From Takakia lepidozioides (taxonomy: Eukaryota; Plantae; Bryophyta), in contig CM060732.1 in assembly GCA_030704615.1 (NCBI GenBank), forward strand, positions 28,892,001 to 28,956,000: a stretch of 64,000 bases of DNA, read 5' to 3'. Position 1 is the first letter of the stretch. Each line of letters begins with the position of its first letter. Below the pieces are notes generated by a model. It was not told the DNA's origin, did not search any database, and worked only from the letters and a program-made list of their open reading frames with translations. The position numbers and the translations under genes were made by a program. Below, one piece after another: positions 1-41,637 of the stretch.

Positions 1-1095
1 ACAATTGCACCCTCTTTCGATCATGGGATTGGGCTACAGGTGGAGTCTTGACTTCGCAGGGCCGTTGCCACTGACCATGCGCCACAACAAGTACGTGTTG
101 GTGATGGTGGAGCACTTCTCCAAGTGGATTGAATTGGTTCCATTGCCTGATAAGGCTAGTGAGGGAGCTGCGTATGCATTCCTGGATTGTGTGCTTAGCC
201 GATTCGGTGCTCCAGCTGAGGTACTCACGGACCAAGGGAGAGAGTTCTTGGGGGAGTTTCAGGCTTTGTGTGACAAGGCCTTGATAGACCACCGCACCAC
301 TTCTCGGGATCATCCTGAAGCCGATGGCTTGGCAGAGAGAGTTGTTCAGACAGTAAAGAGGGGTTTGCGCAAGTATGGCTTGCAGAAGGGACACCTAGGA
401 GATTGGGACCTTCAGTTACCCTGGTTAGCCATGGGCTACAGGTTCAGCAGCAAGCATCATGCATCACTTCCTCCTTCTCACCATACTTTTTTCTCTTTGG
501 CCGAGAGCCGGATTTGCCTACATCCATTCGCAGAGAAGCTGCTACAGTTCTTAACCTTGACGATCCGGACGTGTGGGCACGTGCATGTGAGCAGCGTGCA
601 GAGTTGTTCAAGAGAGTCATGCCTATGGCTTTCGAGAACCTTGCCATTGCACAACACCGTGATACGTTGAGGTATGCTACCATACGTGGTGGGGGCTATC
701 GTCCTGGGGTTCGGAGATTCAACCCTGGTGACTATGTCTATCTGCAGCAGACTGCTCCTACGACCCTGGATGTGACTGCAGGACGTGTTATTTTGAGGGT
801 TCGAGAGGTCTTGCCCTCAGGCGTCTTGGTCTTGGAGGGTCGGGATGGCATAACTTGGAAGGACCATGTGCGTAATTGTGCGCCATGTCACCTTCCGAAT
901 GTCGATGGCAGGATTGACCCAAACCTGGCAGTGGTATCTGCAGGTTTGAGGTGCATGTTGTGTGGGTCTACTAAAGGGGCAGCCACCATGCTGGTATGTG
1001 ATCGGTGCTCTAGAGGTTGGCATATGGGATGCTTGACTCCACCTCTTGAGATGGTTCCGGATGGGGATTGGTTATGTCCACATTGCATTGGATAG
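1..1095 (+). pseudogene. Ty3/gypsy pol 3' end: integrase core plus C-terminal PHD finger (frameshift near 465; runs off the window start)
   Basis: ORF 5-670 has the rve core (WSLDFAGP, VLTDQGREF, HPEADGLAERVVQT). It continues in ORF 403-1095 (FSPYFFLFGREP...) and ends in C-x2-C...LVCDRCSRGWHMGCLTPPL...WLCPHC, a C4HC3 PHD. Confidence 0.9.
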
Positions 1096-1340: not shown

Positions 1341-1788
1341 AGCTAGGGGGGCGATTGTGCTAGACTACTTTATTGTGCATATATGTGTGGTGTGGTTTGG
1401 ACAGCGATGTAGTTGTGTAGCGATATGTATGCGCACGACAGCTGTCAAGTTAAATAAGCACAGTGTGAAAACAGCTAGAATAAAACTAGTTATTTGTATT
1501 TAACAATTGGATTTAGGTCAAGTGTTAAATCAGGTGTCAAGTTTAGTTTGACACCTGGTCTGTCTTATCTTCACGAGAGCGGCAGTCGCGCAGCTCATCT
1601 CTCTCGAGTTGAGCCTGCGCGACCGAGCTCCTGCATCGTTTAGGACTGAGTGTGCTCATGATGGGAGTGTAGGTTGTTGTGGGGTGGAGTCCCCACAGCT
1701 TGGGGTGCCCCTGGCTCGACTTCTATTTCTAAGAGTGATGGTTTGGTTTTCATGCTTTGCATCGTGTGTGTCCTTAGCTTTCTTATCA
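1341..1788 (+). mobile_element. Polypurine tract and 3' LTR (1356-1788, TG...CA) of the PHD-integrase gypsy element
   Basis: AGCTAGGGGGGCGAT precedes TGTGCTAG at 1356. The segment ends in TCTTATCA at 1788 and is followed by a repeat of its own first ~85 bp. Confidence 0.7.
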
Positions 1789-1789
1789 T

Positions 1790-1874
1790 TGTGCTAGACT
1801 ACTTTATTGTGCATATATGTGTGGTGTGGTTTGGACAGCGATGTAGTTGTGTAGCGATATGTATGCGCACGACA
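1790..1874 (+). repeat. Exact duplicate of the first 85 bp of the LTR (1356-1440)
   Basis: TGTGCTAGACTAC...GCGCACGACA is identical at 1356-1440 and 1790-1874. Confidence 0.95.
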
Positions 1875-2893
1875 ATTCTCTCACGCTTCTTCGAGAGGTT
1901 TCCCAACTTGAGGTCCCCTCGCATGCTCTTCTTTTTACGTTTGACGTGGAATCTCTATATCCCAGCATCATCACCGAGCTCGGCTTGTATGAGCTCGAAT
2001 GTGCTATTGGAGGTAATTTCACCAAACACAAAAAAGACCTGATCATGACCCTCGCTGGATTAGTCTTGAAACACCATTACCTTGAGTTCAATGGTAGTTT
2101 TTGGCACCAAATTCGCGGGACGGCGATGGGGAGCAACTTTGCAGTTGTTTACGCTTGTTTGTTCCTCTGTCGGTTGGAGATGTACATGGAGTACGTGTGC
2201 CCATCGGAGCAAGAGCTGCTTTATCTTAAGCGCTATATCGACGATGGCTTTGGCATCTGGGTAGGCTCCGAAAAGAGCCTCCGGTCCTGGTTACGGAACT
2301 ACGGTTCCATGTTCGATGGCATCAAAATCACGACCGCCATAAGCCCGACGTCCGCCGACATCTTGGATATCACCTTCCTCAAAGGAGACGACTTCATCCA
2401 AACTTGACGGCTCTCTACTAGATGTCATCAAAAGGCCCAGAACAAGTATCAATACTTGCCTTGGTCCTCGTGGCATCCACATCACCAAAAGAAAGCTTTC
2501 GTCATCGGCGAGCTCCAACGGTACGTAATACGAGAAAGCACCATCCAAGGGTTCAACCATTTGCGACTTTTGTTTTACAAACGTCTTCAAGCCCGAGGTT
2601 ATCCGGCGGCGTTCATCCGGAGTTGCTTCACCAAGATCTCCTACGACCTCAGATCCGCTCTACTCGACCAACAGACGCAACGCGCAGTTGAGGGTAAACG
2701 GGCCCCCCTTGTTCTTAAGCTCGACTACTCTTCGTACACTCGAGCCTTGAACTTGGGGGCCACCCTAAACCCTAGACTCCACGAGTTGCTTCAGCAAGTC
2801 CCGGAGCTTCGGTTTCTTCCTCGAGCGATGATTTGTTGGAGGAATCCGCGAAAGCTGAGTTCATTCCTAGTTAAATCTAGAATGATAGGATGA
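1875..2893 (+). pseudogene. Penelope-like reverse transcriptase (family A), in-frame TGA at 2405-2407, no GIY-YIG domain
   Basis: Motifs FDVESLYPSI, QIRGTAMGSNFAVVYACLFL, RYIDDGFGIW, CHQKAQNKYQYLPWSSWHPHHQK...GELQRY; the ORF ends at WRNPRKLSSFLVKSRMIG*. The TGA corresponds to CGA in copy 2. Confidence 0.9.
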
Positions 2894-3104
2894 TCTTGTA
2901 GTGCAAATGTCCCTAGCATTATTAATTTTGCCTCTTTGATAGCCCTAGTGTTGATGTTAAAGTCAAAGGGTTCCAACAATTAATTTGGACCATTGACTAA
3001 TTAATGCAGTCTTGACTTGGAGGCTAAATTAGTGCTTTAGTGGCATTATTATTGCCTTGGGAATTATCCCATATCGTTTGCACATAGTGAGGGTGCTTTT
3101 CTAG

Positions 3105-3111
3105 TATATAA
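3105..3111 (+). promoter_or_regulatory. TATA box of the PLE-A pseudo-LTR
   Basis: TATATAA about 40 nt upstream of the hammerhead core; the same arrangement recurs at 5414, 37529 and 38837. Confidence 0.7.
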
Positions 3112-3142
3112 GGATAGGCTTGGCTCTTAGGACTTCATCTCT

Positions 3143-3199
3143 TGGTGTTCCACTGATGAGCTTGAGCAATCAAGCGAAACTTGTTTGGAATAAAACACC
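3143..3199 (+). ncRNA. Type I minimal hammerhead ribozyme (PLE-A)
   Basis: Stem I TGTTCCA/TGGAATA, core CTGATGA, stem II GCTTGA-GCAA-TCAAGC, GAAA, very short stem III, predicted cleavage after GTT (3185). Confidence 0.9.
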
Positions 3200-4019
3200 T
3201 TAACTCTTTTTGTGTCTCCACATTTAGAGAAGTCGAGAGTCTAGTCCTTGCCCGCCCGGGCAACTTGGATCGAAGGGGTGCTCGGCTCCGAGGGGAATCC
3301 CAACCCTTGGATACTTCCGAGGTCTTTTTTCTTTCCAAAGCACGGGCGTATAGAGCCTTCCGTTTGACGCCATCTTAGCCACCGCTTACAATGGGGAAGG
3401 CGGCTGGGGGTATATGGTAATCGTGTCGGGCAAGCTAATTTAGCCCCGACTACACGGTTCCCCCTGTCGTACGCCCGATGGTCGGAGAGAAGGGATTTGG
3501 TTGATCCTCCCTCGAGTTCATCTCGAGCGATCAGAGGACTATGGGCATGCGCAAGCCTCTGCCGACCTAACCTTCTCGTCGTCGATGACCTTATGCGGTA
3601 ATCCCTCCCATTCTTCCTTAGAGGTACGAACCTCTTTTTGAAGGTGGGGCATATAAGTTTTCCAACTAGGGGTTGAGACTTGACCCTATGTTTGTGAGTG
3701 CCTTGAGCGCATGCTTGCCCATAGTGAGCAAGATTTTTGTCGCTAAACAAGGAGAAGCAAACATAAAAAAGCTTACGGTTGGAGCGAAAGTGTCTCATTC
3801 TTCAATTAGAGAACCTTATCTCGTGAGGGCGGGAGTCCTTGCATAAGACATAATAGTCTTATAGCATCCCTTTAGGCACGATAGGCGCACTTTGTATGCA
3901 TTTGTCTTGGTTTCCATTGCATTTGTATTTGGGTCCTAACCGGGCCCCCTTAAAATTTACTGTGTCTTTTTCCAGTATTTTTTCTATTTTTTGTTATCTT
4001 TGCAAGCCTTTGTTGACCA

Positions 4020-4071
4020 CCCTAAACCCTAAACCCCAAACCCTAAACCCTAAACCCTAAACCCTAAACCC
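4020..4071 (-). repeat. Interstitial plant telomeric repeat, (CCCTAAA)7 on the + strand
   Basis: Seven 7-mers (one CCCCAAA variant) plus CCC, located exactly between two PLEs. Confidence 0.97.
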
Positions 4072-4073
4072 TT

Positions 4074-5165
4074 TTTGAGCACGCATCCAAGTGGTTGCAT
4101 CACCATCTGTTTCCCATTCTGCTCGAGGAAGATAACCATTTGGTAGATTCTATATCTTTGTTGAAAGATCTGTCGGATAGGCAACTTCCTGGCGACCTGC
4201 TTTTGTTCACCTTTGCTGTGGAGTCATTGTATCCTAGCATTCCTACTGGGGACGGGCTTCGACGATTGAAGGAGATGATTGCCGGCAAGCTCAAGTCACC
4301 TCGGTTTGAAAGATTCGTCCTGAGTCTTTCTCGCATGGTGTTGGAGAATAACTATCTTCAATTTGGCTCCAGCTATTGGCATCAGATCCGAGGCACGGCA
4401 ATGGGTAGCAACTTTGCTGTTGTTTATGCTTGTCTCTTTCTTTGCAGCTTAGAAAGAGAGTTGGCTGGTGCTGGAGGAGGCATGTGGCCTCTATACTACA
4501 AGAGATACATCGATGATGGATTTGGAATTTGGGCAGGATCTCAGGCAAGTTTGGAGGCTTGGCTCGATGGATACAACTCTCTTAGTCCCACAATTCGGAT
4601 TCAAAGGGTAATCTCTGAGTCTACGGTTGACATTCTTGATATTAAGTTCTTCAAGGGAGCTGATTTTGTCAACCATGGGATTTTATCTTCGAGATGTCAT
4701 CAAAAGGCACTCAACAGATACCAGTATTTGCCATGGACCTCGTGTCATCCACGACACCAAAAACGAGCATTCATCATTGGCGAATTACGACGTTACACTT
4801 TGAGGGAGAGCACACGGGCAGGTTTTTCTGAGATCAGGCAACTGTTCTATGAGCGACTGCGTGCTCGAGGCTATCCAAAGTCTTTTATCTTGGAGTGTTT
4901 TGTGCTTTGTGACTATGCACAACGTGCTACACTGTTGACTTCAGAGTCCACTCGTAAGTTGACGGGCAATCGGGCCCCCTTGGTTTTGAAACTTGAGCAT
5001 TCGCGTTATACTCAAGCTCTAAGCTTTGAGGGAGTCCTAAACCCTAAACTTCATGAGGGCTTTTTGAAAGTTCCGCAGTTAGCGTCTTTTGACAGACCTA
5101 TGGTATGTTGGAAGAGGGCACGGAACTTGCGTTCCTATCTAGTTCGTGCTATGTTACAAACCTAG
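4074..5165 (+). CDS. Penelope-like reverse transcriptase (family B), 5'-truncated, open frame, motif A Asp replaced by Ala, no endonuclease
   Basis: FTFAVESLYPSIP, QIRGTAMGSNFAVVYACLFL, RYIDDGFGIW, CHQKALNRYQYLPWTSCHPRHQK...GELRRY; ends WKRARNLRSYLVRAMLQT*. Confidence 0.88.
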   Translation, partial: FEHASKWLHHHLFPILLEEDNHLVDSISLLKDLSDRQLPGDLLLFTFAVESLYPSIPTGDGLRRLKEMIAGKLKSPRFERFVLSLSRMVLENNYLQFGSSYWHQIRGTAMGSNFAVVYACLFLCSLERELAGAGGGMWPLYYKRYIDDGFGIWAGSQASLEAWLDGYNSLSPTIRIQRVISESTVDILDIKFFKGADFVNHGILSSRCHQKALNRYQYLPWTSCHPRHQKRAFIIGELRRYTLRESTRAGFSEIRQLFYERLRARGYPKSFILECFVLCDYAQRATLLTSESTRKLTGNRAPLVLKLEHSRYTQALSFEGVLNPKLHEGFLKVPQLASFDRPMVCWKRARNLRSYLVRAMLQT

Positions 5166-5199
5166 AGGCTAGTTGTATTTGAGACATGCAGTTAGCTTC

Positions 5200-5372
5200 T
5201 AGTTTGGATGATTATCCATTTTGGAGAGAACATTAGGATGTTTTTCATCTAGATTTTCATGCGTTGGATATTTCTCCCCTGCCGAGAAAACTTTGGATGT
5301 TTTTCATCTAAGTTTTCATGTGTTGGACGATCTCTCCAGCCAAGACAATTTTGGATGTTTTCCATCCATTAG
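5200..5372 (+). repeat. Degenerate ~60-bp tandem repeat (about 2.5 units) upstream of the PLE-B TATA box
   Basis: GGATGTTTT(T/C)CATC recurs near 5236, 5296 and 5353. Confidence 0.6.
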
Positions 5373-5413
5373 GTATTTTCTCTCCCCCCCCGAGACAAGT
5401 TCACTTTCCGCAG

Positions 5414-5420
5414 TATATAA
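5414..5420 (+). promoter_or_regulatory. TATA box of the PLE-B pseudo-LTR
   Basis: CAGTATATAAG, about 40 nt upstream of the hammerhead. Confidence 0.7.
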
Positions 5421-5460
5421 GCGGGGCAAGGGGTGCACATTGTATCTCTTTTCCTTCTCT

Positions 5461-5504
5461 TTCCCACTGATGAGCTCACGCGCTGAGCGAAACTAGTTTG
5501 GGGA
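5461..5504 (+). ncRNA. Type I minimal hammerhead ribozyme (PLE-B)
   Basis: Stem I TTCCCA/TGGGGA, CTGATGA, stem II GCTCA-CGCGC-TGAGC, GAAA, palindromic AAACTAGTTT in place of a stable stem III, predicted cleavage after GTT (5498). Confidence 0.92.
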
Positions 5505-5560
5505 TTATAGAGATTCGCTTTGCTGCATCTTGTGTTCTTGTCTCTTTGTCTCATTGGCGG

Positions 5561-5583
5561 CGTTGTTGTTGTTGTTGTTGTTG
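5561..5583 (+). repeat. (GTT)n microsatellite in the PLE-B leader
   Basis: About 7 GTT units. Confidence 0.9.
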
Positions 5584-6106
5584 AGTTTTAGATTTGATCT
5601 TCTGCATAGTTCATTGCATTCATTTGCTTTGTGTCTATTGTAGTGCATGTTTTAAACTCCTTTTCGAGTGTTACATGTTAGATCTCCTTCTAAGACTGCT
5701 CTTTAGTGTGTCTATTCTCTTTCTCAGAGATAGGTTACTATTCTCCTGTCCTTACAGTGAATTAGTTTCATCACACACACTTGCCTCTTGCATATACTTG
5801 CATTTGCACTTTAGAACGTTGCAACATCACTCCCACTCTGTTCTATTCTAGTTTTGTGTCTCAGGATCGATTCTTTTAGTTTTGATTCACAGGCTAGATA
5901 TTTCTACAAGCTTTCTAAGGTGTCCATAACTGGCCCCCCTAAAAACTTGTTTGCACTTTGCTACTAATGCACCCGGTGCATTCGCGGTTCGAACTCTGTT
6001 GCACTGCTACATGTATTTGTTTCCACTCTTTTGTAGACCCTAAACATTTGTTATGATGTTAGCTGCAACTTCTTAACCTTCTTCTTCCAAGCGTCCTAGG
6101 ATAGAG

Positions 6107-7249
6107 ATGAATAGTGATGGTGCTCCTGCAGAAGATCTACCGTCTTATTCGCCTCCAAGGGATTTATCTCCTACTCCAAGGCCGCAAGTTGGGATCTTTT
6201 TCAACCAGAATGATCATTCTCCAGACTTTGTGGATGCTATTCGCAAGTTGTTGGACAACTCTCTGGCGCAGTACAAGAAGGATTTCAAGAGACTTCAACG
6301 TCTCAAGGCAACTTCCGACAAACTCAGATCTCAAAAAGCTGCCGGTGAAATTCCTCATGCTTGTAGAGTTGCTTGTCCGAAGTTGGTCATCTCTTCTGCC
6401 TCTGTCCAGACGTCTTTGGATGCTACTGTCCTAGCAGCCACTGTTGCTTACCATTCAGCTTTGCAAACAGCTTTTATTCAAGCTCATTCCGATCTGGTAC
6501 AAGAAGTTGAAGCTGTTTTGAGCAAATCCTCTGATGTTTTCATTGCTCGACTCAGGGAGATCAACTTGCATGTGGATGTATCTTCTTGCACTGACCAGAT
6601 TCAGGATTCTTCTTGGCTCTTTGATGAACTTGACTTTGTGTGCACTCAAGCCACTACAGCCTGGTATGCCGGAATTTCTTGCTTTCGCGCCAACCACAAC
6701 CTCGGTACTGCAGTGAGGGATAAGGCGTTACATGAAAGGAACCAAGCTAGAGATCAGGCCATGGCAGATGCTGATGTTCTTCCTACTGAGCCTACCATTG
6801 CCGAGCTAGTAAGGAAAGAGGTGCAGAAACAACTTTCCCACTCACGAAAGAAAACTTCTCTCTCTCCTACTCGCCCTAAGCAACATCAACGAGCGCGTTC
6901 TTCCTCTCCTAACCACAAGAGGCGACAACAGCGTGGCCGCTCACCTGCTCGACGAGTCTCCAAGACTCAACCTACCAGCCGAGGCACTTCAGCAAATGCC
7001 AAGGTAACTTCCTCCAAGGCAAACTCTTCAAAGCAGCAGGGAAATGGCCAACAGCGGAATGGGACTGCTCGCACCCGTTTCGCTGCATCGCGTTCATCTT
7101 CTCCGAGCAAATCCGCCCTACGTTCTCAGACCCGTTCTGGTTCTGGACAACAAAAGTCGGGGCAAAACCAACAACAGAAGCTCAAGAAGAAGGTCACATG
7201 GGCAGATCCAAGCCGAAGAGAGCTCGCAAGCTCTTCTGGTGGCCGTTGA
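6107..7249 (+). CDS. PLE-B ORF1, 380 aa: helical/coiled-coil N-terminal part and basic Ser/Arg/Gln-rich C-terminal part (putative nucleic-acid chaperone)
   Basis: Uninterrupted ATG-initiated ORF between the hammerhead and the RT N-terminus. Function is inferred from position and composition only. Confidence 0.75.
   Translation: MNSDGAPAEDLPSYSPPRDLSPTPRPQVGIFFNQNDHSPDFVDAIRKLLDNSLAQYKKDFKRLQRLKATSDKLRSQKAAGEIPHACRVACPKLVISSASVQTSLDATVLAATVAYHSALQTAFIQAHSDLVQEVEAVLSKSSDVFIARLREINLHVDVSSCTDQIQDSSWLFDELDFVCTQATTAWYAGISCFRANHNLGTAVRDKALHERNQARDQAMADADVLPTEPTIAELVRKEVQKQLSHSRKKTSLSPTRPKQHQRARSSSPNHKRRQQRGRSPARRVSKTQPTSRGTSANAKVTSSKANSSKQQGNGQQRNGTARTRFAASRSSSPSKSALRSQTRSGSGQQKSGQNQQQKLKKKVTWADPSRRELASSSGGR
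7039..7109 (+). promoter_or_regulatory. Predicted -1 programmed ribosomal frameshift signal (G GGA AAT plus H-type pseudoknot)
   Basis: Heptamer 7039-7045 in X_XXY_YYZ register with ORF1; 6-nt spacer; 12-bp stem 7052-7063/7074-7085; loop TGCTCG (7066-7071) complementary to CGAGCA (7104-7109); the -1 frame is open from 6913 into the RT. Confidence 0.8.
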
Positions 7250-7592
7250 GGGATGTAGAAGGCTATAAGCTTTATCTTTTTTCTTGCAAGAGAGTCTCTC
7301 AGGCAGAGAACAGGTTAACCAACGTGGCCATCCACAACATGGCCAATCGTCCACTCTCTTGTTTTGAAAAGAAGCTTTTAGGCCTAGGTTTGAGTTTTAT
7401 TCCTCATCCTACTCCTCCTTCTCCCTCTTCTATTCTTGATGCTTATGACTCTTTGGCTCGATCTTTACGTCTTCGATATCACTTCAGGGATGCTAGAGAT
7501 AGACCCATTCCTCCTTTCAGAGTTCCTCAACCTTCTTGGGATCAGTGTGTGCGACTTCCTGCTCTGGAACGCATTATCATCGAGGGTCGCAA
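7045..7592 (+). CDS. N-terminal region of the PLE-B RT (in the -1 frame of ORF1), truncated
   Basis: IHNMANRPLSCFEKKLLGLGLSFIPHP...LARSLRLRYHF...PFRVPQPSW resembles the conserved N-terminal block of Penelope-like RTs. Confidence 0.75.
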
Positions 7593-9949
7593 CATTAGAT
7601 GGAGGGGGATGAGGAGCTCCTTCGAGGGAGGCTTTGTGGATTACAACGGGTCGCACCAACGATGGAGATCCACACAGACACTAGCATGGTCCAAATTACT
7701 CCAATTATATTTTCTCTTTGAAATCGACTGGTTTATAATAGACATTCCACAGTTTTTTCCAAATATAAATTTCCTCTTCGAAATTGGTTGGTTTAGGTCG
7801 GTGCCGACTATGCACTCTTTGACCATTGATTTTTACATGTGCACTAGTTTTTCTCACTTAAACTTGGAGCTCACATGAGCTCATATTTAACTGGAATTCG
7901 TATTAGTGTCTACTGCATGTCATACGATCCCAAGCATTTCTTCGAAATCGTGAGGGTCCAGTCGTTCGCATTTCTGTGGCTTTCTGTGGCTTTTGTGTTC
8001 ATGTAACAATGATTTCTTAAGGATACCGAGGAATCGTCGAGCGGATACTCGCTACCGACCGTGCCACTCTAGCCGAAACAGATAAGAGGACTTAGAAGTT
8101 GGTGCCGACTACCACCACATGAGGTCATCAAAACTGTCTTTTTTACATGTTCTCGGAGAAAATATGTAGTCGGCAACGACTACAGTCGAATTTGTCAGTA
8201 GCTATCATCATGTTGGCGAATAGTCGCTGCCGACTGCCCCCACGCCAGCAGAAAAAAGAGAAGAGGTCACAGAATTCAGTGCCGACTACCACCAACCGGG
8301 ACTATGGTTGCTTCGAAGTCAATTCACATCAAGGGAGGGACCGTGATCACGTGTTGGCCGTCAAGCTGACCACTTCAATTGTTACTAAATTTTTTAACAA
8401 GACGGATACACGCTTCAACAAAAACTATAACGGTGAAGAGAATTTACACGATCTAACAACTTACTGATCACCATAAACTTGAAATATGAACAACGATGAA
8501 AAACTGAAATATGAACGATGTCTGATTGCAGTTCTTCAATATATCACACAAAATAAATAGCTGATCATCACCGCTCATTATAGTTGGTGTACGTCCAAAG
8601 GCTAGACATATTTCTATCAGTATGAGTAAAAAGAGAATGGGAGGCAGAGCGAGCAAGGGAGGCAGAGCGAGCGAGGAAGAAAACTAGATTATGCTTATCG
8701 AGCTTTGAACGGGGCGTGGTGCAAATTCTTGTACTCTGGTTTTTAATTTTCCTTTCTTAATCACTTAGAGGCCAGTAGTCTGGGTGCATTTTGGCTAAGT
8801 CCCTTAATGAAATTTGTTGTTGGTTTCTGCGGATGAAATCGCGGTTTGTCATCCAATGCAAATTTCTGGATGAGAACTTATGCGGATAGATTCCACTCCT
8901 TCACGCGACATTCGGGCTATTAGTCTAGAGCTCCTAGCATAGACACGGGCTGCTCGAGAGGGAGAGTCATCACACCGGGCTTCAAGCACGAGGTTGTGCG
9001 CTTAAGGGATTTGAAGTATTTCGGCGCTCTCTCTATATTTGGCGGTATATTTAGAGCCTGAGGGGCTGCATCTTGTTTTGTGTCAGCAATGGTGTCTGGC
9101 GGGCATCAGATGAGCTGGGATGGGGGCAGTCAGCAACAGACAATGGCGGCGAGGAATTATGAGCGTGATGGAGCTCCAACGATATACAGGAAATGATGGC
9201 ACCGGATATTAGCTTTTGCAATGCCGCTCGACTTCCCTTGGAAAGTAGAGAGGGAGGGGAGAGATGGAGAGTTGTGGATGATCATGAGGAGGACCATAGT
9301 GGAGGAGGAGTGATTCAGCTGTAGGAAAAATATTCTCTTTTGGTTCGATTGTATTTTTGGGGCATGTGAAAGAGCAGTAATATGGAGGTTAAGGTCGTAG
9401 GGTGATGCCTGAGAGAATGCAACGAGACACGATCCGTGAGTTTTTGCCTTATGGCAGCCTACAGGCATGTAAAGGATTTAAATTTTTCCCTTCAATAATC
9501 TTGAATAAAATTCTCAAATGCTACCTCCCCTTTCAAAAAAATAAAATGAACCAAAGCCGGTGGACATCTACACGGCTGTCGGAAAGGTGGTTATTGCATG
9601 CGGGCCCACATGGCTATTGCCTTGGGAAAGTGGCAATTGCATGTGGGGCCCATTTGGCGGCTGCATGCAGCGCTAACCGCTAGGAGCCATCAGAACGGCA
9701 CGACGACGAACCGGTGGTCGATGTAGGGCCCCTGACCACTGCCATCTTGGAAGAGCACAGTAATATCTTTCTTGAAAGTTCAGTAAAAGCACACGTTTCT
9801 TGAGCAGAGTTTGGAGTTCGTTGTTCCTCATAGTGCAGAGCCCAATGGAGCCTAAAACAACTTGCATGAATGTTGTTGAAAGCTCACTAGCACCCCCCAG
9901 CAAAGGATCTTTGTCAAAATGTTGATGCTGTCAGATTTTCGAGCACAAC

Positions 9950-10737: not shown

Positions 10738-11062
10738 AATGAGTCCGCCTATATTGGCGGTCGCATATAATTTATTATTTTAGCGACCGCCCATATTGGC
10801 GGTCGCTTGTAATTTAATATTTTGTTAAATTAAGCGACAGCCAGTATTGGCGGTCGCCGGTAATTTATTTATTTATAAATGAAGCGACCGCCCATATTGG
10901 CGGTCGCTCGTAATTTATTTATTTTTAAATGAAGCGACCGCCCATATTGGCGGTCGCCCGTAATTTATTAATTTATTTATAAATGAAGCGACCTCCTATA
11001 TTGGCGGTCACCCGTAATTTATTTATTTTTAAATGAAGCGACCGCCCATATTGGCGGTCGCT
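10738..11062. repeat. Array of GCGACCGCC-N5-GGCGGTCGC hairpins separated by AT-rich spacers (about 7 units)
   Basis: Directly visible; same family as 32774-34365. Confidence 0.9.
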
Positions 11063-11247
11063 CTTCTTGTTTTTATACGCCACGTGTCATACTGCGACGC
11101 CATCCCGACTGCAGAGGAGGGAATCAGACGTCAACATGTGTCGCATCGTGATTTTGACACGTGGTTCCTCATGTCAATTGACACGCGCCGCTGTGGGTGG
11201 GGGGGGGGGGGTTTGGGGATTTAATTTATTGTTATTATAATTACTAT

Positions 11248-15684: not shown

Positions 15685-16770
15685 CCACCTTTTCCAATAC
15701 ATTCAGGAAAAGGGGATCATGATGTACACATTAGCCAATTTGAGCACATGTGTATTGTGAACAATGAGAATGGCGATGATGCCAATATGAGACTGTTTCC
15801 TTGTTCACTTATAAAGAAAGCAAGTGAATGGTATGCAAGATTCCCTGATAATCATTTCTTAACCTGGAATGGCTTGAATACATTCCGAAATAGGTTCAGG
15901 ACAAGTAAAACTGAGGATGAAGTATATGGAAGTCTACAACAGTTAAAGCAAAAGAAGCATGAAACTGTTGAGGAGTATATGGAAAAGATGGAATTGATGA
16001 TGAAAAAGCTGGCTGTTGTACCAGCACCAGGTTTACAGAAGACTTGGTTTGTGAGTGGACTAAGGACAGAGTTTCAAAAGAAAGTGGATATGTTACCCCA
16101 TAATACAGTGGAGGAGGCATTTGAAACAGCGAACAGAATTGAGCAATTGGGAATGCTCAGGAGAGAGAAAAGGGATGATGAAGACTCTGAGGATGAGTCA
16201 GATGAGGAAGAAGAGCAAGAGCTTAAAAAGAAGAGTAAGAGGAAGAGGGATAACTATGAGAAAAGATTAGAAGAAATCTTGAAGAAGTATGCCACAGAGG
16301 CTGCAACACATTGGAGGAAGGGTGTTTGGTGTGCAAATTGTCAGAATGAAGGCCATACCACCACTGAATGCCACATGAAGGAGAAACACTGTACTATCTG
16401 TAAAATGGATAACCATTCTACTGAGAATTGTTACTACAACAGAAGGACAACAGCAAGAGAACCTAGGCAAGTAAGGGTGCATCAAGTGCAGCCCCAACCA
16501 AGAAGAAACAGTGATCAGGACCACTATGGTAGGCCTGGTGGTTATAACAATGACATGGAAGGGAGAGGTAATCCAAGAGGGAATTACCAAGGAAATTCCA
16601 GAGGCAACTATCAGGGTAATCCAAGGGGGAATTACCAGCCAGGGAATCAGGATTACAGAAACAATCCCATAACAAACCAAGGACGAGGACCTAATGGGGA
16701 AGAACTGTGTTACTATTGTAATCAGGCAGGACATCGCAAGGCAGCCTGTCCATTCTGGATGAGACACTAG
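15685..16770 (+). pseudogene. gag with CCHC zinc knuckles; premature TAG
   Basis: Retrotransposon gag domain, CANCQNEGHTTTEC, CTICKMDNHSTENC, CYYCNQAGHRKAAC; the TAG is CAG in copy 2. Confidence 0.9.
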
Positions 16771-19700
16771 AATGAGATGAGAGCTCCAATGAATGAGGGG
16801 CCAGTGGTGGCAGCTCACATGGTTAGGCCATGTGTTGTACCAGAAGTAAGTACAATGATAGTAACCAGAAGCAAAGCCAAAATAATACCTCCAGTAGATG
16901 AGGAAGGTGATGATAATGAAGATGGCAGTGATGTGCCTGAAGATGATGAGGCTTGGAGAGATGAGAAGGAACTGCACAAAGAAGTGGCAGATACCATAAG
17001 GGAAATGCAGAAGAGTACTGATATTCCTATGGCAGATTCTTCTGATTCTGAAAGAGAAGAGGAAGTGAGTGAGGATGAAGGGAAGAAAGAAGCTGCAGAA
17101 ATGCAGAGTAATGAAGGGACTTTAGCTGAAGTAATATGCCAGTCCAAAGCGGAGATTACCATTGGACAGCTATTGGCTGTGGCACCTTATTGTAGACACA
17201 GGCTATATCAAGCAATCAATCGAATTGCCCATGTGACAGGGAACACAGACCTGAACAGCAAGGTGACCAGTGATAATGTGAAGCCGGAAGGGCGAGAAAC
17301 AGTCATGGACTTTGATGATTCTATGCCAGTAATCCAATTGAGAATTGGAAGCACAGAACTAACTGATGTACTGATAGATGGAGGCTCTGGAGTGAATATC
17401 ATGACAGACCAATTAAGGCAGAAGCTTGGTCTAAGTAACATGAAACCAGCCCCATTTACATTAACAATGGCAGATCAAAGAAGTGTCATGGAAGCTTACT
17501 CCTTATTGTTGGGTCGACCGTGGCTGAAACAGGCTAGGGTATTCCATGATTGGAATTCCCAGTTACTAACTGTGCATGATGGGATGCACAAGATACAAAT
17601 CACCACTAAGAAATCTAGTAGATTACCTACTACGAGAAGACCTCGAGGGGTCAGGGAGTATGACTGGAGGGGAGGACTTGATGAGGAGCAGGAAGCTACC
17701 CTGTTCGCTGCACACCCAGATTGGGAGCAGGTTGCAGAGATGCAACTAGAAGGCCTAAGTTGTTTAAAATGTATCTGCTGTGGTGTAGTGACAGCAACAC
17801 CAATTGAGGGTGAAACAAACAGTTATCCACCACATTTCTATGAAGAAAGAGAGGGAGAAATGGAAATCCTAGAGGAACCAGCCACTGTGAGTTTACAGGA
17901 TGAAGTGGTGACTGGTTGGACAATCATAGCTGATGAGCAGGTGAGAGAAGTGAATGTGGGAACTGAAGAGGAACCGAGGATGGTGAAGGTGGGGGCTGAT
18001 TTGGAGCCAGAATTCTTTGAGGAAGCTAAGAGTTTGTTCATCAAATACAGAGATGTATTTGCTTGGAGCTATGAGGATCTAAAAAAGATACCACCTGAGA
18101 TCTGTCAGCATAAGATTGAACTGGAACCAGGGTCAGTACCAATCAAACAGGCAAGGTACATAATGAATCCCAACTATGCACAGAAGGTTGGAGAAGAGAT
18201 CAAGAAGTTGGCTGAGGCTAAGTTTATATACCCGATAGAGTATACAACTTGGTTGTCAACCATTGTGATAGTTCCCAAGAAGAATGGTAAACTGAGAGTT
18301 TGTGTGAACTATAAGAAGTTGAATGCTTGCACGAAGAAAGATCCTTTCCCTTTGCCATTCACAGAAGCGGTATTGGACACTGTGGCAGGCCATGAGATGT
18401 ACTCATTCATGGATGGCTTCAGTGGTTATAATCAAGTGCAAGTGGCAGAAGAAGACCAGGGAAAGACAGCTTTCATCACACATTGGGGTGCTTATGCATA
18501 CAAAGTCATGCCTTTTGGACTTTGTAATGCACCAGCAACCTTTCAGAGAGTGATAAGTGAATCTTTTCATGAGTATCTGGATGATTTCAGTGTGTACAGC
18601 TCTAAGAATGAGCACTTGCATAAATTGGAGTTATGTTTGGCCAGATGTAGGATGAGAGGTTTGGGCCTAAACGCAGAGAAGTGTACTTTCTGTGTGAACT
18701 CATGGGTGCTTTTGGGACACATTGTGTGTAAGAGGGGACCAGAAAGACAGAGGCCATTAAAGCCTCTCCACCACTAGTAAATGTTAAGAGTCTAAGGAGA
18801 TTCCTTGGACAAACCAGTTATTACAGAAGATTTGTCAGACGGTATGCACAGATAGCAACACCATTGAGCAAGCTTCTGGAGAAAGATGCAGTGTTTGCAT
18901 GGACAGTTGAATGTCAACAGGCTTTTGAGGAACTTACATTGTCAGTAACAACTACACCTGTGCTGATTAACCCTCATTGGCATGTAGTATTTCATGTTCA
19001 CTATGATGCCTCAGGAGAAGCGTTGGGAGCAGTGTTAGCCCAAAATGTTACAGGAAATATAAATACACCTGTGTACTATGCTAGCAGGTTGATGAACAAT
19101 GCTGAAAGGAACTATAGCACAACTAAAAGAGAAGCACTGGCAATGATTTATGTAGTCAAGAAATTCAGGCATTACCTATTGGGAAGGAAGTTTATGTTTT
19201 ATGTGGATCACCAGGCTCTGATATATTTGGTGAACAAACTTTTGATTAAGTGGAAGGATAGCAAGGTGGTTAATAATCTTGCACGAGTTTGAGTTCGAAG
19301 TTGTTTACAAGCCTGGCCGTTTGCATCTTGTGGCAGATCATTTGTCACGCCTATCAACAAGAGAGCCCGCCACAGGAGTAGACGACCAATTACCTGATGC
19401 GAGTTTATTTGCAGTGGAGGTGCAGGGAAGTGCAGATGACTGGTTGGATTGGCAGTGGCCAATCAGATACTACCTTACTCATGGTCAGTGCCCACCTAGT
19501 TATGGAAAGGAGCAGAGTAAGAGAATCGCTATCAAGGCTTTACCTTATACTATGGTAGGGGGCAGAATGTATAAGCTAGGACCTGATGGAGTACTTAAAC
19601 GATGCTTGTACCACCATGAAGTAAATAAAGTTTTGGAGGAAGTTCATAAAGGAGTGGCTGGAGGTCATTTTGGAGAAAAGACTACCAGTAGGAAGATACT

Positions 19701-20800
19701 ACTTGCAGGTTACTGGTGGCCTACTTTGTTCAAAGATGTACACAAGTATTGTCAGAGTTGTGATGAGTGTCAGAGGCTAGGACCATTGCAGAGATCTGGA
19801 AAGATGGCTTTGCATCCTACAATGCCTACTGAACCATTTCAGAAAATGGGGACTAGACTTTGTTGGACCAATTAACCCACCAGCCAAGAATACACAGAAC
19901 AAGTATATAATCACAGCCACTGATTATACTACAAAGTGGGTGGAAGCTAAAGCTCTGAGGGACAACACAGCTAAGTCCACAGCAAGGTTCCTGTATGAGA
20001 ACATACTTACACGATTTGGCTGTCCCCTAGAATTTATCAGTGACCAGGGAAGTCACTTCATTAATGAGACCATTGAACTATTGACTAAAGAGTTCATGAT
20101 TGTGCATAAGAAGAGTACAACTTATTACCCACAGGGTAATGGGCGGGCAGAGGATACCAACATGTACTATCTTGGCAAAGATAGTCAATGCAAACAAAAT
20201 AGATTAGGATACAAAGCTGCTGACAGCTTTGTGGTCATACATGACTTCATATAAAGTCACCACTAAGTATACACCATTCCAATTAGTTTATGGTATGGAA
20301 GCTTTACTTCCAGTGGAATTCTTTGTTACCTACCATGAGAACTGAATGGGGAAGGAGAATGGAATTGGAAGATTCAATTAAGGTCAGGAAACATGAATTA
20401 TACCATGTGGAAGAAGTACGTGCTGATGCAGCTGATAACATGACCAGAATTCAGATGAAGGATCAGTTTGATAAAGGTAAATTAAAGACTTTTAAGTCGG
20501 GAGATTTGGTACTGTGGTCGCAGAAGAAGGGGAAGATTAAAGCTTATAAGCTTAAATCACCATGGAAATGACCTTATGTCATATAGAAGATGTATGATAA
20601 TAACACCGCCATGTTACAAACCATTAACAAAGAAATGATGGGAAGAGTCAATGCCAATAAGTTGAAGGGGTACAGTGGTATCCATGACAAACCATTGCAG
20701 CACGATTTGTATGTTGAAACGCAAAAACAGTCACGGGCTGCGCCAGTGATATCAATGGAGTACGGAGCACTTGTCGCTAAGTCGAGTGTGTATGACTAGG
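16771..20800 (+). pseudogene. pol (protease, RT, RNase H, integrase), disrupted
   Basis: LIDGGSG, DGFSGYNQV, YLDDF, DASGEALGAVL, HKGVAGGH...CDEC, SDQGSHF spread over several frames. Confidence 0.92.
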
Positions 20801-20825
20801 GCGGGAAGTACAGGTGTTTGAATAG

Positions 20826-20940
20826 ATATCACAGCCCATCACAACGTGACACAGCCTATCACAGCCCATCACAGTGTCACACAGCCTATCACAGCCCACC
20901 ACAGTGCCACACAGCCTATCACAGCCCAACACAGCCCATG
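20826..20940 (+). repeat. CACAGCC-rich minisatellite between pol and the extra ORF
   Basis: CACAGCCTATCACAGCCC units; homologous to 58585-58950 and to the LTR repeats. Confidence 0.85.
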
Positions 20941-32773: not shown

Positions 32774-34365
32774 AAATGGAGCGACCGCCAAGGTGACGGT
32801 CGCTTCTACGAGGTTTGCACTCCGCGTGGAGCGAGGAATGAAGGGGGAGGGGTGGGCATATAAGCTCCCAGTCATTATTTTGGAAATGAAGTGACCGCCG
32901 TTACTGGCAGTCGCTTTTTTATTTTTTGGGAGCAAAATGGAGCGACCGCCATTAGCGGCGGTCGCCGTTATTGTTGTTTTTTGTAATGGCGGTCGTGGCG
33001 GTCGCTTTTATTGAAATTTGGTTAGAAATGGAGCGACCGCCGCTTATATTTTAATTGTTTTGAAAATGAAAATTGAGCGACTGCCAAGGTGGCGGTCACT
33101 TCTACGAAGTGTGACCTGCGCATGGAGCGAGGAGTGAGGCGGGGGGGAGGGGGGCATATAAGCTCCGGGACATTCTCCCCTCACTTCGCTTGAAGTTTTT
33201 TATTTTTATTTTAAAATGCAGCGACCGCCATTACTGGCGGTCGTTTTTTTTTTTTTTTTTGGGCGAAATGGAGCGACCGCCATTTGTGGCGGTCGTTTTT
33301 TTTTGTTTTTAAATGGAGCGACCGCCATGGTGGCGGTCGCTTCTACGAGGTCTGCCCTGCGCGTGGAGCGAGGATTGAGGGGGGGGGGGGGCATATAAGC
33401 CCCCAGTCATTCTCCCCTCACTTCCATTATTGGCAGTTTTTGTTTCTACAAAATACAGCGACCGCCATTTCTGGCAGTCGCTTTTATTTTAATTATTTTG
33501 GAAATGAAGCGACCGCCTATGTTGGCGGTCGCTTATTTTTTTTAAATGTTTTCAAAATGAAGCGACCGCCTATGCTGGCGGTCGCTTATTTTTTTTAAAT
33601 GTTTTGAAAATGAAACGACCGCCTATGCTGGCGGTCGTTTTTATTTTTATTTTATTATTAATTTAAATGAAGCGACCGCCTATGTTGGCGGTCGCTTATT
33701 TATTTTAAATGTTTTTGAAAATGAAGCGACCGCCTTTGCTGGCGGTTGCTTATTGTTTTTAAATTTTTTTTAAATGAAGCGACCGCCTATGTTTGCAGTC
33801 GCTTTTTTTGTTTTAAAGTTTTTGAAAATGAAGCGACCGCCTATGTTGGCGGTCGCTTATTGTTTTTCAATGTTTTGAAAATGAAGCGACCGCCTATGCT
33901 GGCAATCGCTTATTTATTTTATTTATTTTTTAAATGAAGCGACCGCCTATGTTGGCGGTCGCTTATTTTTTTTTAAGTTTTTGAAAATGAAGCGACCGCC
34001 TCTGTTGGCAGTCGTTTATTTATCTTAAATGTTTTGAAAATGAAGCGACCGCCTATGCTGGCGGTCGCTTATTTTTTTTAATTTTTTTAAAATGAAGCGA
34101 CCGCCTATGTTGGCGGTCGCTTATTTATTTTAAATGTTTTGAAAATGAAGCGACCGCCTATGCTGGCGGTCGATTATTATTTTTATTTATTTATAAATGA
34201 AGCGACCGCCTATGTCGGCGGCCGCTTATTTTTTTTAAAGTTTTTGAAAATGAAGCGACCGCCTATGTTGGCGGTCGCTTATTTATTTTAAATGTTTTGA
34301 AAATGAATCGACCGCCTATGCTGGCGGTCGCTTATTTTTTTTATTTCCGGAAGTTGGCGGTCGCT
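32774..34365. repeat. Large array (over 20 units) of AAATGAAGCGACCGCC-N5-GGCGGTCGC hairpins with AT-rich spacers
   Basis: Directly visible, period about 55-65 bp. Confidence 0.95.
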
Positions 34366-41600: not shown

Positions 41601-41637
41601 ATTTCCCTCCTGCAGGTAATTCGAATCCCGGATGAAT

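Follow-up and report, generated by a model that had tools for sequence, protein, structure and literature searches.

A probable relic chain of endonuclease-less Penelope-like element copies, joined through telomere repeats, in the moss Takakia lepidozioides

INTRODUCTION

How did partial copies of two families of Penelope-like elements (PLEs) come to lie head to tail, with a short telomere tract between them, in the Takakia lepidozioides genome, and what does this arrangement say about the DNA end on which it formed? PLEs that lack an endonuclease (EN) attach to telomeric G-overhangs, have 5′-truncated ends that are capped by telomere repeats, and carry hammerhead ribozymes (PMC8557442, PMC4209133, PMC12477314, PMC13159263). 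Such chains are known in a land plant, Selaginella moellendorffii (PMC12477314, PMC4209133, PMC13159263). An earlier note on this DNA interpreted the locus as a former or nearby chromosome end and as part of a retroelement-assisted telomere system. Our analysis of the window (the whole 64-kb stretch of DNA) indicates that the block at 1875–7596 is probably a relic head-to-tail chain of partial, Coprina-type EN-less PLE copies that represent at least two families of a land-plant clade. The features discussed below are listed in Table 1.

Table 1. Positions of PLE-related features in the window
Feature	Position	Strand	Description
Left flank, outside element	1354–1874	+	LTR-like, downstream of integrase-PHD ORF
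A1, family A copy 1	1875–2893	+	5′-truncated RT, aa ~282–618 of full-length relatives
Telomere-like CCCTAAACCCTAGA in A RT ORF	2763–2776	+	Codons ACC CTA AAC CCT AGA = TLNPR; 131 nt before stop
Family A TATATAA box	3105–3111	+	48 nt 5′ of hammerhead core
Family A type-I hammerhead	3136–3200	+	CUGAUGA 3153–3159, helix II 3160–3175, GAAA 3176–3179
PLE 3′ tail	3251–4019	+	Final ~140 nt with GGCCCCC-TTAAA and ga-CCCTAAAC boxes
C-strand telomere tract	4020–4071	+	CCCTAAA ×7 plus CCC = 7.4 units; one CCCCAAA variant
B1, family B copy 1	4072–5165	+	5′-truncated RT, aa 257–618, frame open
Telomere-like TCCTAAACCCTAAA in B RT ORF	5035–5048	+	Codons GTC CTA AAC CCT AAA = VLNPK; 131 nt before stop
59-bp tandem repeat, 2.4 copies	5224–5366	+	B 3′ UTR
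Family B TATATAA box	5414–5420	+	~50 nt 5′ of hammerhead core
Family B type-I hammerhead	5449–5516	+	CUGAUGA 5467–5473, GAAA 5489–5492
B1 tail	5499–6045	+	Terminal motif CCCTAAAC at 6038–6045 = joint with B2
B2, family B copy 2	6046–7596	+	61-nt 5′ UTR, ORF1, RT N-terminus
B2 ORF1	6107–7249	+	380 aa: helical bundle, then basic disordered tail
Short head-to-head telomere-repeat junction	37468–37506	+	(TTTAGGG)3, then degenerate C-strand units TTAAACCCTATACCCTAT
C-like 3′ UTR fragment, third B-like family	37507–37691	+	72% identical to 5392–5554; ends CCTTG
A2, family A copy 2	37692–38982	+	96% identical to 1958–3250; frameshifted

RESULTS

A telomere tract lies between two PLE ends

A telomere 14-mer, with one mismatch permitted, has 10 matches in the window, whereas 0.02 are expected. 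The edges of the main tract coincide exactly with PLE ends, namely the conserved 3′-terminal motif on the left and a 5′ truncation point on the right. Directly to its left is the PLE 3′ terminus (...ttgttgacca) of the tail at 3251–4019. Its 3′ edge at 4071 meets base 4072, the first base of the truncated B1 RT, and the B1 reading frame opens in the final tract bases (LFEHASKW, corresponding to VFEHASKW of P0002). L015, a contig from a T. lepidozioides dataset, holds a near-identical intact copy that fixes the truncation point and confirms the proposal that the C-strand tract caps a 5′-truncated family B RT. The polarity likewise matches that of published telomere-primed EN-less PLEs, in which the C-strand repeat caps a 5′-truncated copy on one side and, on the other, meets the 3′ terminus of that copy's left neighbor.

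The companion proposal, of a fusion between the family A 3′ end and the tract, stands only in part: A PLE 3′ terminus is present there, but the segment 3251–4019 is not common to A2. The likeness of A1 and A2 stops at 3250/38982, after CCTTG in both, and the tail is absent from A2, the second family A copy in the window. Assignment of 3251–4019 to the family A 3′ end is therefore unproven, and the segment may be either the tail of family A itself or a separate tail-only copy. Its GGCCCCC-TTAAA and ga-CCCTAAAC boxes are also present at other PLE 3′ termini. Because the likeness ends at 3250 and no telomere repeat is found at 3250/3251, this joint would not have been telomere-primed if the tail is a separate copy.

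Two RT families lack a nuclease domain

The A and B RTs share 52.7% identity over 338 aa. Both are encoded on the + strand, and they occupy separate branches of a tree within a clade (support 100/99) that also holds Selaginella, Cryptomeria, and Ginkgo sequences. These comparisons mark A and B as distinct RT lineages, both in a land-plant clade, as the description of two divergent families in the same orientation had held. The tblastn matches with full-length relatives extend over 1874–2890 for A1 (aa 282–618 of P0002) and over 4071–5156 for B1 (aa 257–618). A1 has a single in-frame stop at 2405–2407, and its ORF ends at the usual C-terminus of the family.

Both ORFs end where relatives of 580–630 aa end. 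Pfam searches for GIY-YIG found none in the window RTs or in the ORFs beyond their stops, and none in two sets of full-length relatives (14 + 8). These results bear out the view that no GIY-YIG domain follows the RT and that the elements are EN-less PLEs. They are placed putatively as Coprina-type by their architecture, by the DKN motif, and by their kinship with Selaginella elements. Against the PDB, the family profile weakly matches TERT, group II intron, and retron RTs (E 0.004–0.2).

Both families carry a TATA-like box and a hammerhead

Rfam hammerhead scores are below threshold (19.6 bits for A and 16.7 bits for B), with nothing at the gathering score. In an alignment of 10 hammerhead sequences, 84.6% of cells are paired compared with 64.5% in shuffles, and none of 500 shuffles is as high. 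Moreover, compensatory changes occur at 11 of the 13 pairs, which supports the hammerhead that, as had been claimed, follows a TATA-like box in each family. Such a box lies 45–60 nt 5′ of the ribozyme in most relatives. The cores span 3153–3185 (A) and 5467–5498 (B), with predicted cleavage after 3185 and 5498, respectively. The helix III center is palindromic in family B (ACUAGU) and an imperfect palindrome in family A (ACUUGU); the palindromic variants ACUAGU, ACAUGU, ACCGGU, and AUCGAU occur in the alignment. Where transcription starts, where the ribozyme cleaves, and where the RNA ends are predictions from these features.

Family B is represented by two head-to-tail copies

The proposal of a single permuted family B copy does not hold: B1 and B2 are two copies that are joined head to tail at CCCTAAAC. 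The same joint, placed directly before ORF1 of the next unit, is found in L003, L012, L013, and Cryptomeria units 1–2. Nor is a frameshift between ORF1 and RT needed, since the B2 RT comes with an ATG of its own (7198; tblastn homology 7231–7596 = aa 1–122) and relatives have separate ORFs with 5–92 nt between them. B2 is interrupted within the RT at 7596/7597, where its 3′ two-thirds are missing and unrelated DNA follows. L015, which is 99.8% identical, reproduces 5568–7596 and links 7596 to 4072 across 415 nt that are missing in the window, KPADKNLG among them.

A second site contains shorter PLE remnants

About 300 bp past two primase exons, a short head-to-head telomere-repeat junction precedes a chimera of the C-like fragment and A2, which has no repeats at its internal joint. 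The C-like fragment has a TATA box at 37529–37535 and inactivating changes in its hammerhead core (CUAAUGA, GAAG). A2 has a 5′ truncation point different from that of A1 and a mutated hammerhead core (CAAAAC).

Related loci share the arrangement

Chains of the same kind and polarity are present in Selaginella (L001), Cryptomeria (L005), a metagenome (L013), and Closterium (L014). Terminal CCCTAAAC is followed by telomere repeats at L001 6464, L005 13146, and L014 12885, as it is at window position 4020. L013 opens with (CCCTAAA)7 that caps a 5′-truncated copy and is followed by a full unit, a layout like that of B1 and B2. Three Logan contigs from one relative (L002–L004) are circular permutations of a single 3.9-kb unit.

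The chain is internal

To the left of A1 are 1.9 kb of an LTR retrotransposon. An exact 87-bp direct repeat (1354–1440 = 1788–1874) is present there, and A1 is joined to base 87 of its second copy, in mid-LTR. No telomere repeats are found at this junction (1874/1875) or in the left flank, and A1 is thus uncapped. To the right of B2, from 7597 onwards within the window, there is no telomere or subtelomere. The window contains transposable elements, satellites, and gene exons, with no terminal tract, and every PLE copy in it is truncated or broken. The chain is now internal, between two non-canonical junctions, and non-functional.

DISCUSSION

A model for chain growth

The steps that follow are inferred from the anatomy of the block and from what has been published for Athena and Coprina. 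A complete unit would consist of a short 5′ UTR, ORF1 (helical bundle and basic tail), an RT without nuclease, and a 3′ region with a TATA-like promoter, a type-I hammerhead, a tail of 0.1–1.9 kb, and terminal CCCTAAAC. The C-rich terminal RNA motif would pair with a G-rich telomeric 3′ end, and this DNA end would prime cDNA, so that a nuclease is not needed. Synthesis would frequently halt early to give a 5′-truncated copy, telomerase would lengthen the new end, so that CCCTAAA repeats come to stand left of the copy, and the following element could prime on these repeats. The order of addition, from right to left, would be B2, B1 (via a single CCCTAAAC), the seven telomerase repeats, and finally the tail at 3251–4019 with A1. 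From the position of promoter and ribozyme in the 3′ region, we infer that a unit would transcribe its downstream neighbor. Such growth would take place on a free DNA end within reach of telomerase.

The nature of the free end

If that end was a natural chromosome end, at or near this site, then the block would have grown leftward by alternating retrotransposition and telomerase action, with cooperating PLE families that serve as a telomere maintenance system. The polarity is right for a left chromosome end, the Cryptomeria array runs to its contig end, the L013 contig begins in telomere repeats, and published EN-less PLEs are mostly terminal (PMC8557442, PMC13159263). Nevertheless, we regard this scenario as unlikely. 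The mid-LTR joint without repeats, the cut inside the B2 RT, and the mixed content of the window all speak against it. Given the non-canonical outer junctions and the other DNA that now surrounds the block, descent from a former chromosome end is unproven; a healed internal break fits equally well. As for a telomere system, nothing bears on host benefit or cooperation. The families merely co-occur, all copies are truncated or broken, and the repeats are ordinary, canonical telomerase repeats, whose presence means that telomerase is active. This locus gives no evidence for a new telomere system.

A somewhat better, if still doubtful, candidate is an internal double-strand break. Here one of the broken ends would have primed cDNA synthesis from some arbitrary point (7596) within a multi-unit B transcript; telomerase and more PLE RNAs would have extended this end, which would finally have been ligated to the other side (1874). 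Both outer junctions are non-canonical and lie in ordinary repeats, and a 3′-truncated B2 is impossible from reverse transcription that starts at the 3′ end but expected from internal priming. The second site resembles such a patch, with G-strand repeats that face degenerate C-strand repeats capping the C-like/A2 cDNA. However, the flanks (1–1874 and 7597 onwards) form no recognizable empty site, later deletion of a terminal chain accounts for the junctions equally well, and stepwise growth with seven telomerase repeats requires a long-lived free end. As seen from the window, either a natural chromosome end or a healed break may have been the free end.

The chain could also have formed elsewhere and reached this site secondarily as a copy, by segmental duplication (subtelomeric) or as one multi-member read-through cDNA. 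Promoters in the 3′ region would yield transcripts that cross the junctions, and the circular permutations of L002–L004 show that multi-unit templates exist, but the A1–tract–B1 joint has no second copy within the window, and we consider this origin distinctly improbable. It is very hard to credit that these are remnants of nuclease-encoding PLEs beside an unrelated interstitial telomere-like microsatellite, or an assembly chimera. Partial PLE tandems and interstitial telomere repeats are both widespread, and short repeats can mislead assemblers. Against this, the tract edges fall exactly on PLE ends, four independent relatives repeat the layout, a nuclease domain is absent from full-length relatives, and an independent dataset matches 5568–7596.

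Relation to known elements

The closest likeness is to the telomere-associated Coprina-type elements of S. moellendorffii, Repbase Sm1/Sm2 (Gladyshev and Arkhipova 2007, as described in PMC12477314 and PMC13159263). Shared traits are an RT-only ORF of ~620 aa that has a DKN motif but lacks GIY-YIG, a type-I hammerhead in a repeated 3′ region, head-to-tail chains, and C-strand telomere repeats at 5′-truncated ends and 3′ termini. The window RTs fall in one clade with a Selaginella protein, and the locus of that protein has the same layout. In contrast, the host lineage (moss) is new, the RTs match the Selaginella protein at only ~50% identity, the Takakia copies are internal and fragmentary, and there is an ORF1 separate from the RT ORF, whereas descriptions of Coprina usually give a single ORF (PMC13159263). 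Athena/Terminons of bdelloid rotifers are also EN-less PLEs with an upstream ORF, which attach to G-overhangs via reverse-complement telomeric repeats near the hammerhead and build up long chains at the ends of chromosomes (PMC8557442, PMC12477314). By description they differ as a rotifer-specific, most basal PLE clade with many extra ORFs and units that can exceed 40 kb.

Drosophila HeT-A, TART, and TAHRE form same-direction head-to-tail arrays of several mixed families at chromosome ends. In HeT-A, a promoter in the 3′ region drives the downstream neighbor; that promoter is known, whereas its Takakia counterpart is putative. Moreover, the Drosophila elements are non-LTR (LINE-like) and replace telomerase, whereas here telomerase repeats are interleaved with elements and nothing indicates host dependence. 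Nuclease-encoding PLEs (Penelope/Poseidon, Neptune, Nematis, Hydra, and, with an N-terminal nuclease, Naiad/Chlamys) share the related RT core and thumb, 5′-truncated copies, partial tandems (pLTRs), and, in most clades, hammerheads. They insert throughout chromosomes and have a C- or N-terminal GIY-YIG, a domain that is absent from the Takakia elements and their relatives. TERT, too, is primed by a G-rich telomeric 3′ end on a C-rich RNA template, but it copies a short template repeatedly, whereas the element would copy its own long RNA once. The element is without the TEN and TRBD domains of TERT, to which its sequence similarity is marginal. The Takakia chain thus adds a new host to a kind already known from Selaginella, fungi, and rotifers.

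A telomere tract between copies of two Penelope-like families

The tract at 4020-4071 consists of seven CCCTAAA units followed by CCC, and includes a single CCCCAAA unit. A search of the window with the 14-mer CCCTAAACCCTAAA, allowing at most one mismatch, gave 10 matches versus 0.02 expected. Reverse transcriptase (RT) pieces were located by tblastn with full-length relatives as queries, and four pieces were recovered, all on the plus strand (see the table). They represent two families of Penelope-like elements (PLEs), termed A and B, whose RTs share 52.7% identity over 338 residues. Copy A1 carries one in-frame stop (2405-2407) and the other family A copy, A2, is frameshifted. The RT of copy B1, ORF1 (6107-7249) and the RT start of copy B2 are open frames.

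Coordinates of RT pieces, CCTTG junctions and coding telomere motifs
Feature	Position	Strand	Basis
A1 RT piece	1874-2890	+	tblastn, aa 282-618 of relative protein P0002
B1 RT piece	4071-5156	+	tblastn, aa 257-618
B2 RT piece	7231-7596	+	tblastn, aa 1-122
A2	37692-38982	+	96% identity to 1958-3250
CCTTG at end of A1/A2 similarity	3246-3250		
CCTTG at right end of A2	38978-38982		
CCTTG at C-like/A2 joint	37687-37691		
Coding telomere motif, family A	2763-2776		
Coding telomere motif, family B	5035-5048		
Coding telomere motif, Selaginella locus L001	11616-11629		
Coding telomere motif, Cryptomeria locus L005	3564-3575		
Coding telomere motif, relative locus L011	3486-3499		

Copies A1, A2 and B1 are 5′ truncated at three different points, and B1 and B2 form a head-to-tail tandem of a kind that recurs in Cryptomeria and in two contigs of relatives (L005, L012 and L013). 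Frequent 5′ truncation and partial head-to-tail tandems are hallmarks of PLEs. Those that lack an endonuclease (EN-minus PLEs) are further marked by C-strand telomere repeats capping 5′-truncated ends, exactly as (CCCTAAA)7 at 4020-4071 caps B1. A second cap, made of degenerate C-strand telomere units (37489-37506), borders the C-like fragment, a piece of 3′ UTR (37507-37691) from a third, B-like family. The 5′ end of A1 has no telomere cap and is joined to LTR-like DNA. The tract, the two RT families and the exact capping described in the earlier note are real, and its core reading of these sequences as telomere-primed EN-minus PLEs is right.

Units are joined at a telomere-like motif upstream of ORF1

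In relatives, the 3′ terminus of the unit is a C-strand telomere-like motif. The tail of the Selaginella unit ends in ...tctttgaCCCTAAAC and is followed by ~250 bp of telomere-like repeats, which include a second, ~60-nt copy of the terminus alone, and then by the next unit. The Cryptomeria locus contains three units with a 4,339-bp period that are joined at AAACTCCTAAAC, 16 nt 5′ of the ORF1 ATG, and its last unit runs from the AAACTCCTAAAC point into >550 bp of telomere repeats. At a Closterium locus (L014), (CCCTAAA)n follows the tail at 12885. In L012/L013 and L003, CCCTAAACC lies 8-25 nt 5′ of the ORF1 ATG, and the L013 contig starts with (CCCTAAA)7 capping a 5′-truncated copy that is followed by a full unit.

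Judged by its sequence, the window matches this unit plan. The stretch to the left of the tract ends in ...ttgttgacca followed by CCCTAAACCC, and family B carries gtagaCCCTAAAC (6038-6045) 61 nt 5′ of the ORF1 ATG. The terminal CCCTAAAC occurs at 6038-6045 and again where the tract begins (4020). Short reverse-complement telomeric stretches of this type, at or near the 3′ end, are another hallmark of EN-minus PLEs. Because relatives join their units at a telomere-like motif just 5′ of ORF1, what had been taken for a permuted family B copy is instead two members of a chain, B1 (4072-6045) and B2 (6046-7596), and the 3′ tail of B1 accounts for the proposed family B leader.

A Logan contig (L015) bridges the two members. 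It is 99.8% identical to 5568-7596, continues with 415 nt that are missing from the window, IVIKPADKNLGLVI among them, and its next segment is 99% identical to 4072-4262. The bridge establishes that B1 and B2 belong to one family, and it pins the truncation to 4072 and the break to 7596/7597. The source dataset, SRR15431198, is a metagenome obtained by shotgun sequencing of washed Takakia lepidozioides plants (PMC9021317). A family B copy that is uninterrupted across the part missing from the window is present in these data. To judge by the 99.8% identity, the window most probably derives from Takakia or a very near relative.

Three other Logan contigs (L002, L003 and L004; 3,922-3,937 bp) are circular permutations of one ~3.9-kb unit of a single relative, and bases 1-30 of L003 are the same as bases 3908-3937. 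This permutation implies either tandem arrays or a circular molecule as the likely source. Given the hammerheads, it is conceivable that a circular RNA or a rolling-circle template lies behind these contigs.

The tails of the units have little in common. BLAST of the window tails (3187-4019 and 5500-6106) against all fetched loci gave no match, and by eye the tails of the window and of relatives share short terminal boxes alone.

RT relationships and absence of a nuclease domain

A database search returned 74 relatives, and an exhaustive search yielded 4,663 proteins at E ≤ 1e-10. Most matches in a cluster look-up of the relatives are from metagenomes; named relatives are from Selaginella moellendorffii, Cryptomeria japonica, Ginkgo and Closterium. 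The closest relatives are proteins of 580-630 aa whose C-terminus (...CWRNPRKL...) coincides with the end of the window ORFs. PLEs typically carry a DKG/DKN motif upstream of RT1, and the residues D-K-N are invariant in 14/14 full-length relatives. This part of the RT is missing from the window copies (B2 stops at aa 122, B1 begins at aa 257 and A1 at aa ~282), and KPADKNLG is present in L015, whose copy is 99.8% identical to family B.

The claim that these elements encode no GIY-YIG nuclease is borne out by Pfam searches, which found no such domain in the full-length relatives, where a weak RVT_1 match was the sole hit, or in ORFs 3′ of the window RT stops. There is also no extra N-terminal domain, as ~30 aa precede the first conserved motif of the RT N-terminus in the relatives. 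The C-terminal or N-terminal GIY-YIG fusion that defines nuclease-encoding PLEs is not found here. The RT fragments and ORF1 of the window gave no Pfam match. DUF8422 and HTH_animal are precomputed labels of the protein database, and in the PDB the family profile marginally matches RTs of group II introns, retrons and telomerase.

A maximum-likelihood tree of 38 sequences was built from the C-terminal 340-400 aa. The tree is internal to the family, leaving out other matches and named Athena, Coprina, Penelope, Neptune and TERT references. One clade (support 100/99) unites Selaginella, Cryptomeria, Ginkgo and both window RTs. The family A RT groups with relative protein P0001 (69% identity), and the family B RT stands alone on a deep branch. 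The neighboring group, joined at a weakly supported node (85/89), consists of Closterium and L012. On the sequences compared, A and B are old, separate lineages sharing one genome.

ORF1 is conserved and is not linked to RT by a frameshift

A separate ORF1 precedes the RT in the window and in L001, L003, L005, L011 and L012. It is kept across plant elements (E = 5e-23 versus L003), and seven sequences from six sources can be aligned. The structure model of ORF1 is a helical bundle (aa 39-250, pLDDT mostly >90) followed by a basic disordered tail; a PDB fold search with this model gave nothing below E 0.5.

The family B unit had been proposed to include a programmed frameshift between ORF1 and RT. 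We reject this proposal; the two frames overlap by 52 nt in the window, but the RT has its own ATG at 7198, and in relatives ORF1 and RT are separate ORFs 5-92 nt apart, so that no frameshift is needed. Two ORFs are typical of Athena, whereas Coprina elements usually have a single ORF, and the window elements have two. Coprina-1_Alen clusters with Coprina despite its two ORFs (PMC13159263), and therefore ORF number is a weak criterion for Coprina.

A hammerhead ribozyme and putative promoter in the 3′ region

No ribozyme was found in the window by Rfam at the gathering threshold; hammerhead matches appeared below threshold, with E values of ~3-5. We therefore turned to a covariation test with ten candidates, of which the window supplied four and L001, L003, L005, L011, L013 and L014 one each. 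In helices I-III, 84.6% of cells pair, versus 64.5% in shuffles, and none of 500 shuffles reached the observed value. Compensatory changes on both sides occur in 11 of the 13 pairs of this 10-sequence alignment. When the partner was slid by 1-3 columns as a control, 29-47% of cells paired. A CUGAUGA...GAAA core with helices I, II and III is present, and a hammerhead in the pLTR is a PLE hallmark.

The center of helix III varies yet remains self-complementary (ACUAGU, ACAUGU, ACCGGU, AUCGAU); that of family A, ACUUGU, is imperfect. A self-complementary helix III is the dimer-type architecture of canonical type-I and PLE hammerheads, and canonical type-I hammerheads have been described in Selaginella PLEs (PMC4209133). 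The cores of the A2 and C-like hammerheads are mutated. In most relatives, as in the window copies, a TATA-like box lies 45-60 nt 5′ of CUGAUGA, and from this position the transcript would begin just before helix I.

A telomere motif within the RT coding sequence

The codons ACC CTA AAC CCT A(A/G/C)A, which lie ~130 nt before the RT stop, encode T/V-L-N-P-K/R/T. Families A and B share this motif with Selaginella, Cryptomeria and L011; L003 carries a variant form, so that 5/6 land-plant lineages have kept it. Neither the Closterium/L012 group nor distant relatives have it. CTA accounts for 7.5% of Leu codons in these ORFs, and the chance of CTA-AAC-CCT given L-N-P is ~0.02 per lineage. Because the RTs share only ~50% of their residues, conservation of the motif seems to extend to the nucleotide level, synonymous positions included. 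The motif (TLNPK, ACC CTA AAC CCT AAA) could possibly serve as a second pairing site for the G-overhang.

Junctions and the origin of the internal copies

Location at chromosome termini is a further hallmark of EN-minus PLEs. The block at 1875-7596 is internal to the window, and several of its junctions do not fit a simple terminal chain. The 5′ end of A1 abuts base 87 of an LTR-like sequence, with no repeats at the joint; this sequence lies after an integrase-PHD ORF. It holds an exact 87-bp direct repeat (1354-1440 and 1788-1874), the second copy of which adjoins A1. Weak but real LTR-like similarity exists between 1445-1810 and 39026-39377, to the right of A2 (Smith-Waterman score of 50 versus a shuffle maximum of 26). 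At the other end, B2 is interrupted inside the RT and followed by unrelated DNA, and an empty-site comparison showed that the left flank does not continue after 7597. Since reverse transcription from the element 3′ end is excluded for a 3′-truncated copy, B2 points to either a later deletion or internal priming on a multi-unit transcript. The window lends no support to the earlier note's view that this is a former chromosome end, that the families cooperate or that they maintain telomeres.

Window positions 5-1095 encode the LTR-retrotransposon integrase (rve) together with a PHD finger at its C-terminal side (Pfam E = 4e-11); PHD fingers are accessory domains that read chromatin. The surrounding region is repeat-rich, with satellite arrays at 10782-11063, 33450-34343 and 41159-42856. 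A 50-53-bp palindrome-containing repeat occurs at two places, with 17 copies at 33.4 kb, and G+C-rich arrays of 53, 85 and 287 bp lie at 41-43 kb. A Ty3/gypsy-type retrotransposon is present as two large inverted copies (15911-20935 and 64000-58829, ~90% identity), one of which adjoins a 1,060-aa ORF (54345-57527, minus strand) that has no Pfam match. The LTR-retrotransposon polyprotein in the window is nearest to liverwort proteins (~50% identity).

A1 and A2 differ in their 5′ truncation points but stop resembling each other at one shared base (3250/38982), which directly follows CCTTG and lies 65 nt beyond the predicted ribozyme cut. CCTTG is also where the C-like fragment ends, 81 nt beyond its cut, and A2 is joined there without repeats. 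These junctions may reflect a discrete RNA 3′ end used in template switching. The 3′ end of the element RNA would lie either after CCUUG or at the CCCUAAAC motif, and 3251-4019 may be either family A's own tail or a separate tail-only copy. Exact-protein look-ups of ORFs at 3241-3795 (minus strand) and 2456-2890 (plus strand) found no record.

The second site (37468-38982) begins with a short head-to-head junction (37468-37506) in which (TTTAGGG)3 faces TTAAACCCTATACCCTAT, the latter made up of degenerate C-strand units. The C-like fragment follows, with its TATA box and dead hammerhead, and then the decayed A2. Just upstream of the junction, two plus-strand exons (~36590-36702, and 37078-37164 with Pfam E = 8e-9) belong to a DNA primase small-subunit gene, whose sequence includes ...DMTDYNDIRHCC...CLQCWPLMTIAIKVMDIALK. 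No primase exons were recognized downstream of the site within the window. The telomere-repeat junction may mark a truncation of the gene; equally, the gene may have very long introns or an insertion in an intron.

This arrangement resembles a break at which telomere repeats were added to both ends, at one end following PLE cDNA synthesis; alternatively, it may be a very short telomere-to-telomere fusion. If the site is a healing scar, telomerase would have added repeats to one broken end, and the other would have primed a template-switched, chimeric PLE cDNA that was then capped by telomerase. Such a scar would adjoin the possibly truncated primase gene. Opportunistic priming of this kind would be served by the coding telomere motif and by an RNA with a discrete 3′ end located 65-81 nt beyond the cut, after CCUUG. 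The second site shows that PLEs of these families also end up at internal sites. That EN-minus PLE RT and telomerase act jointly on internal breaks as well as natural ends in this moss lineage is a bolder proposal, which we consider unlikely.

Implications for EN-minus PLEs in plants

Among retroelements, EN-minus PLEs are the nearest relatives of telomerase, and they figure in arguments on the origin of that enzyme. Telomere-primed elements of this kind are already known, also from a land plant: in the literature searched, plant EN-minus PLEs are cited for Selaginella only, and no paper combined Takakia and Penelope. The host lineage is new, and the structure of the unit is more sharply defined. 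All loci examined share the order ORF1, RT, 3′ promoter with hammerhead, and tail, and most carry the terminal CCCTAAAC. The unit model is no evidence of a role in telomere maintenance. With the relatives found here, one land-plant clade now also includes a moss (probably Takakia), a conifer (Cryptomeria) and Ginkgo, and the streptophyte alga Closterium represents a probable sister group. For a lineage with normal telomerase, this offers a clear model, open to test, of how the unit is built and where it is primed.
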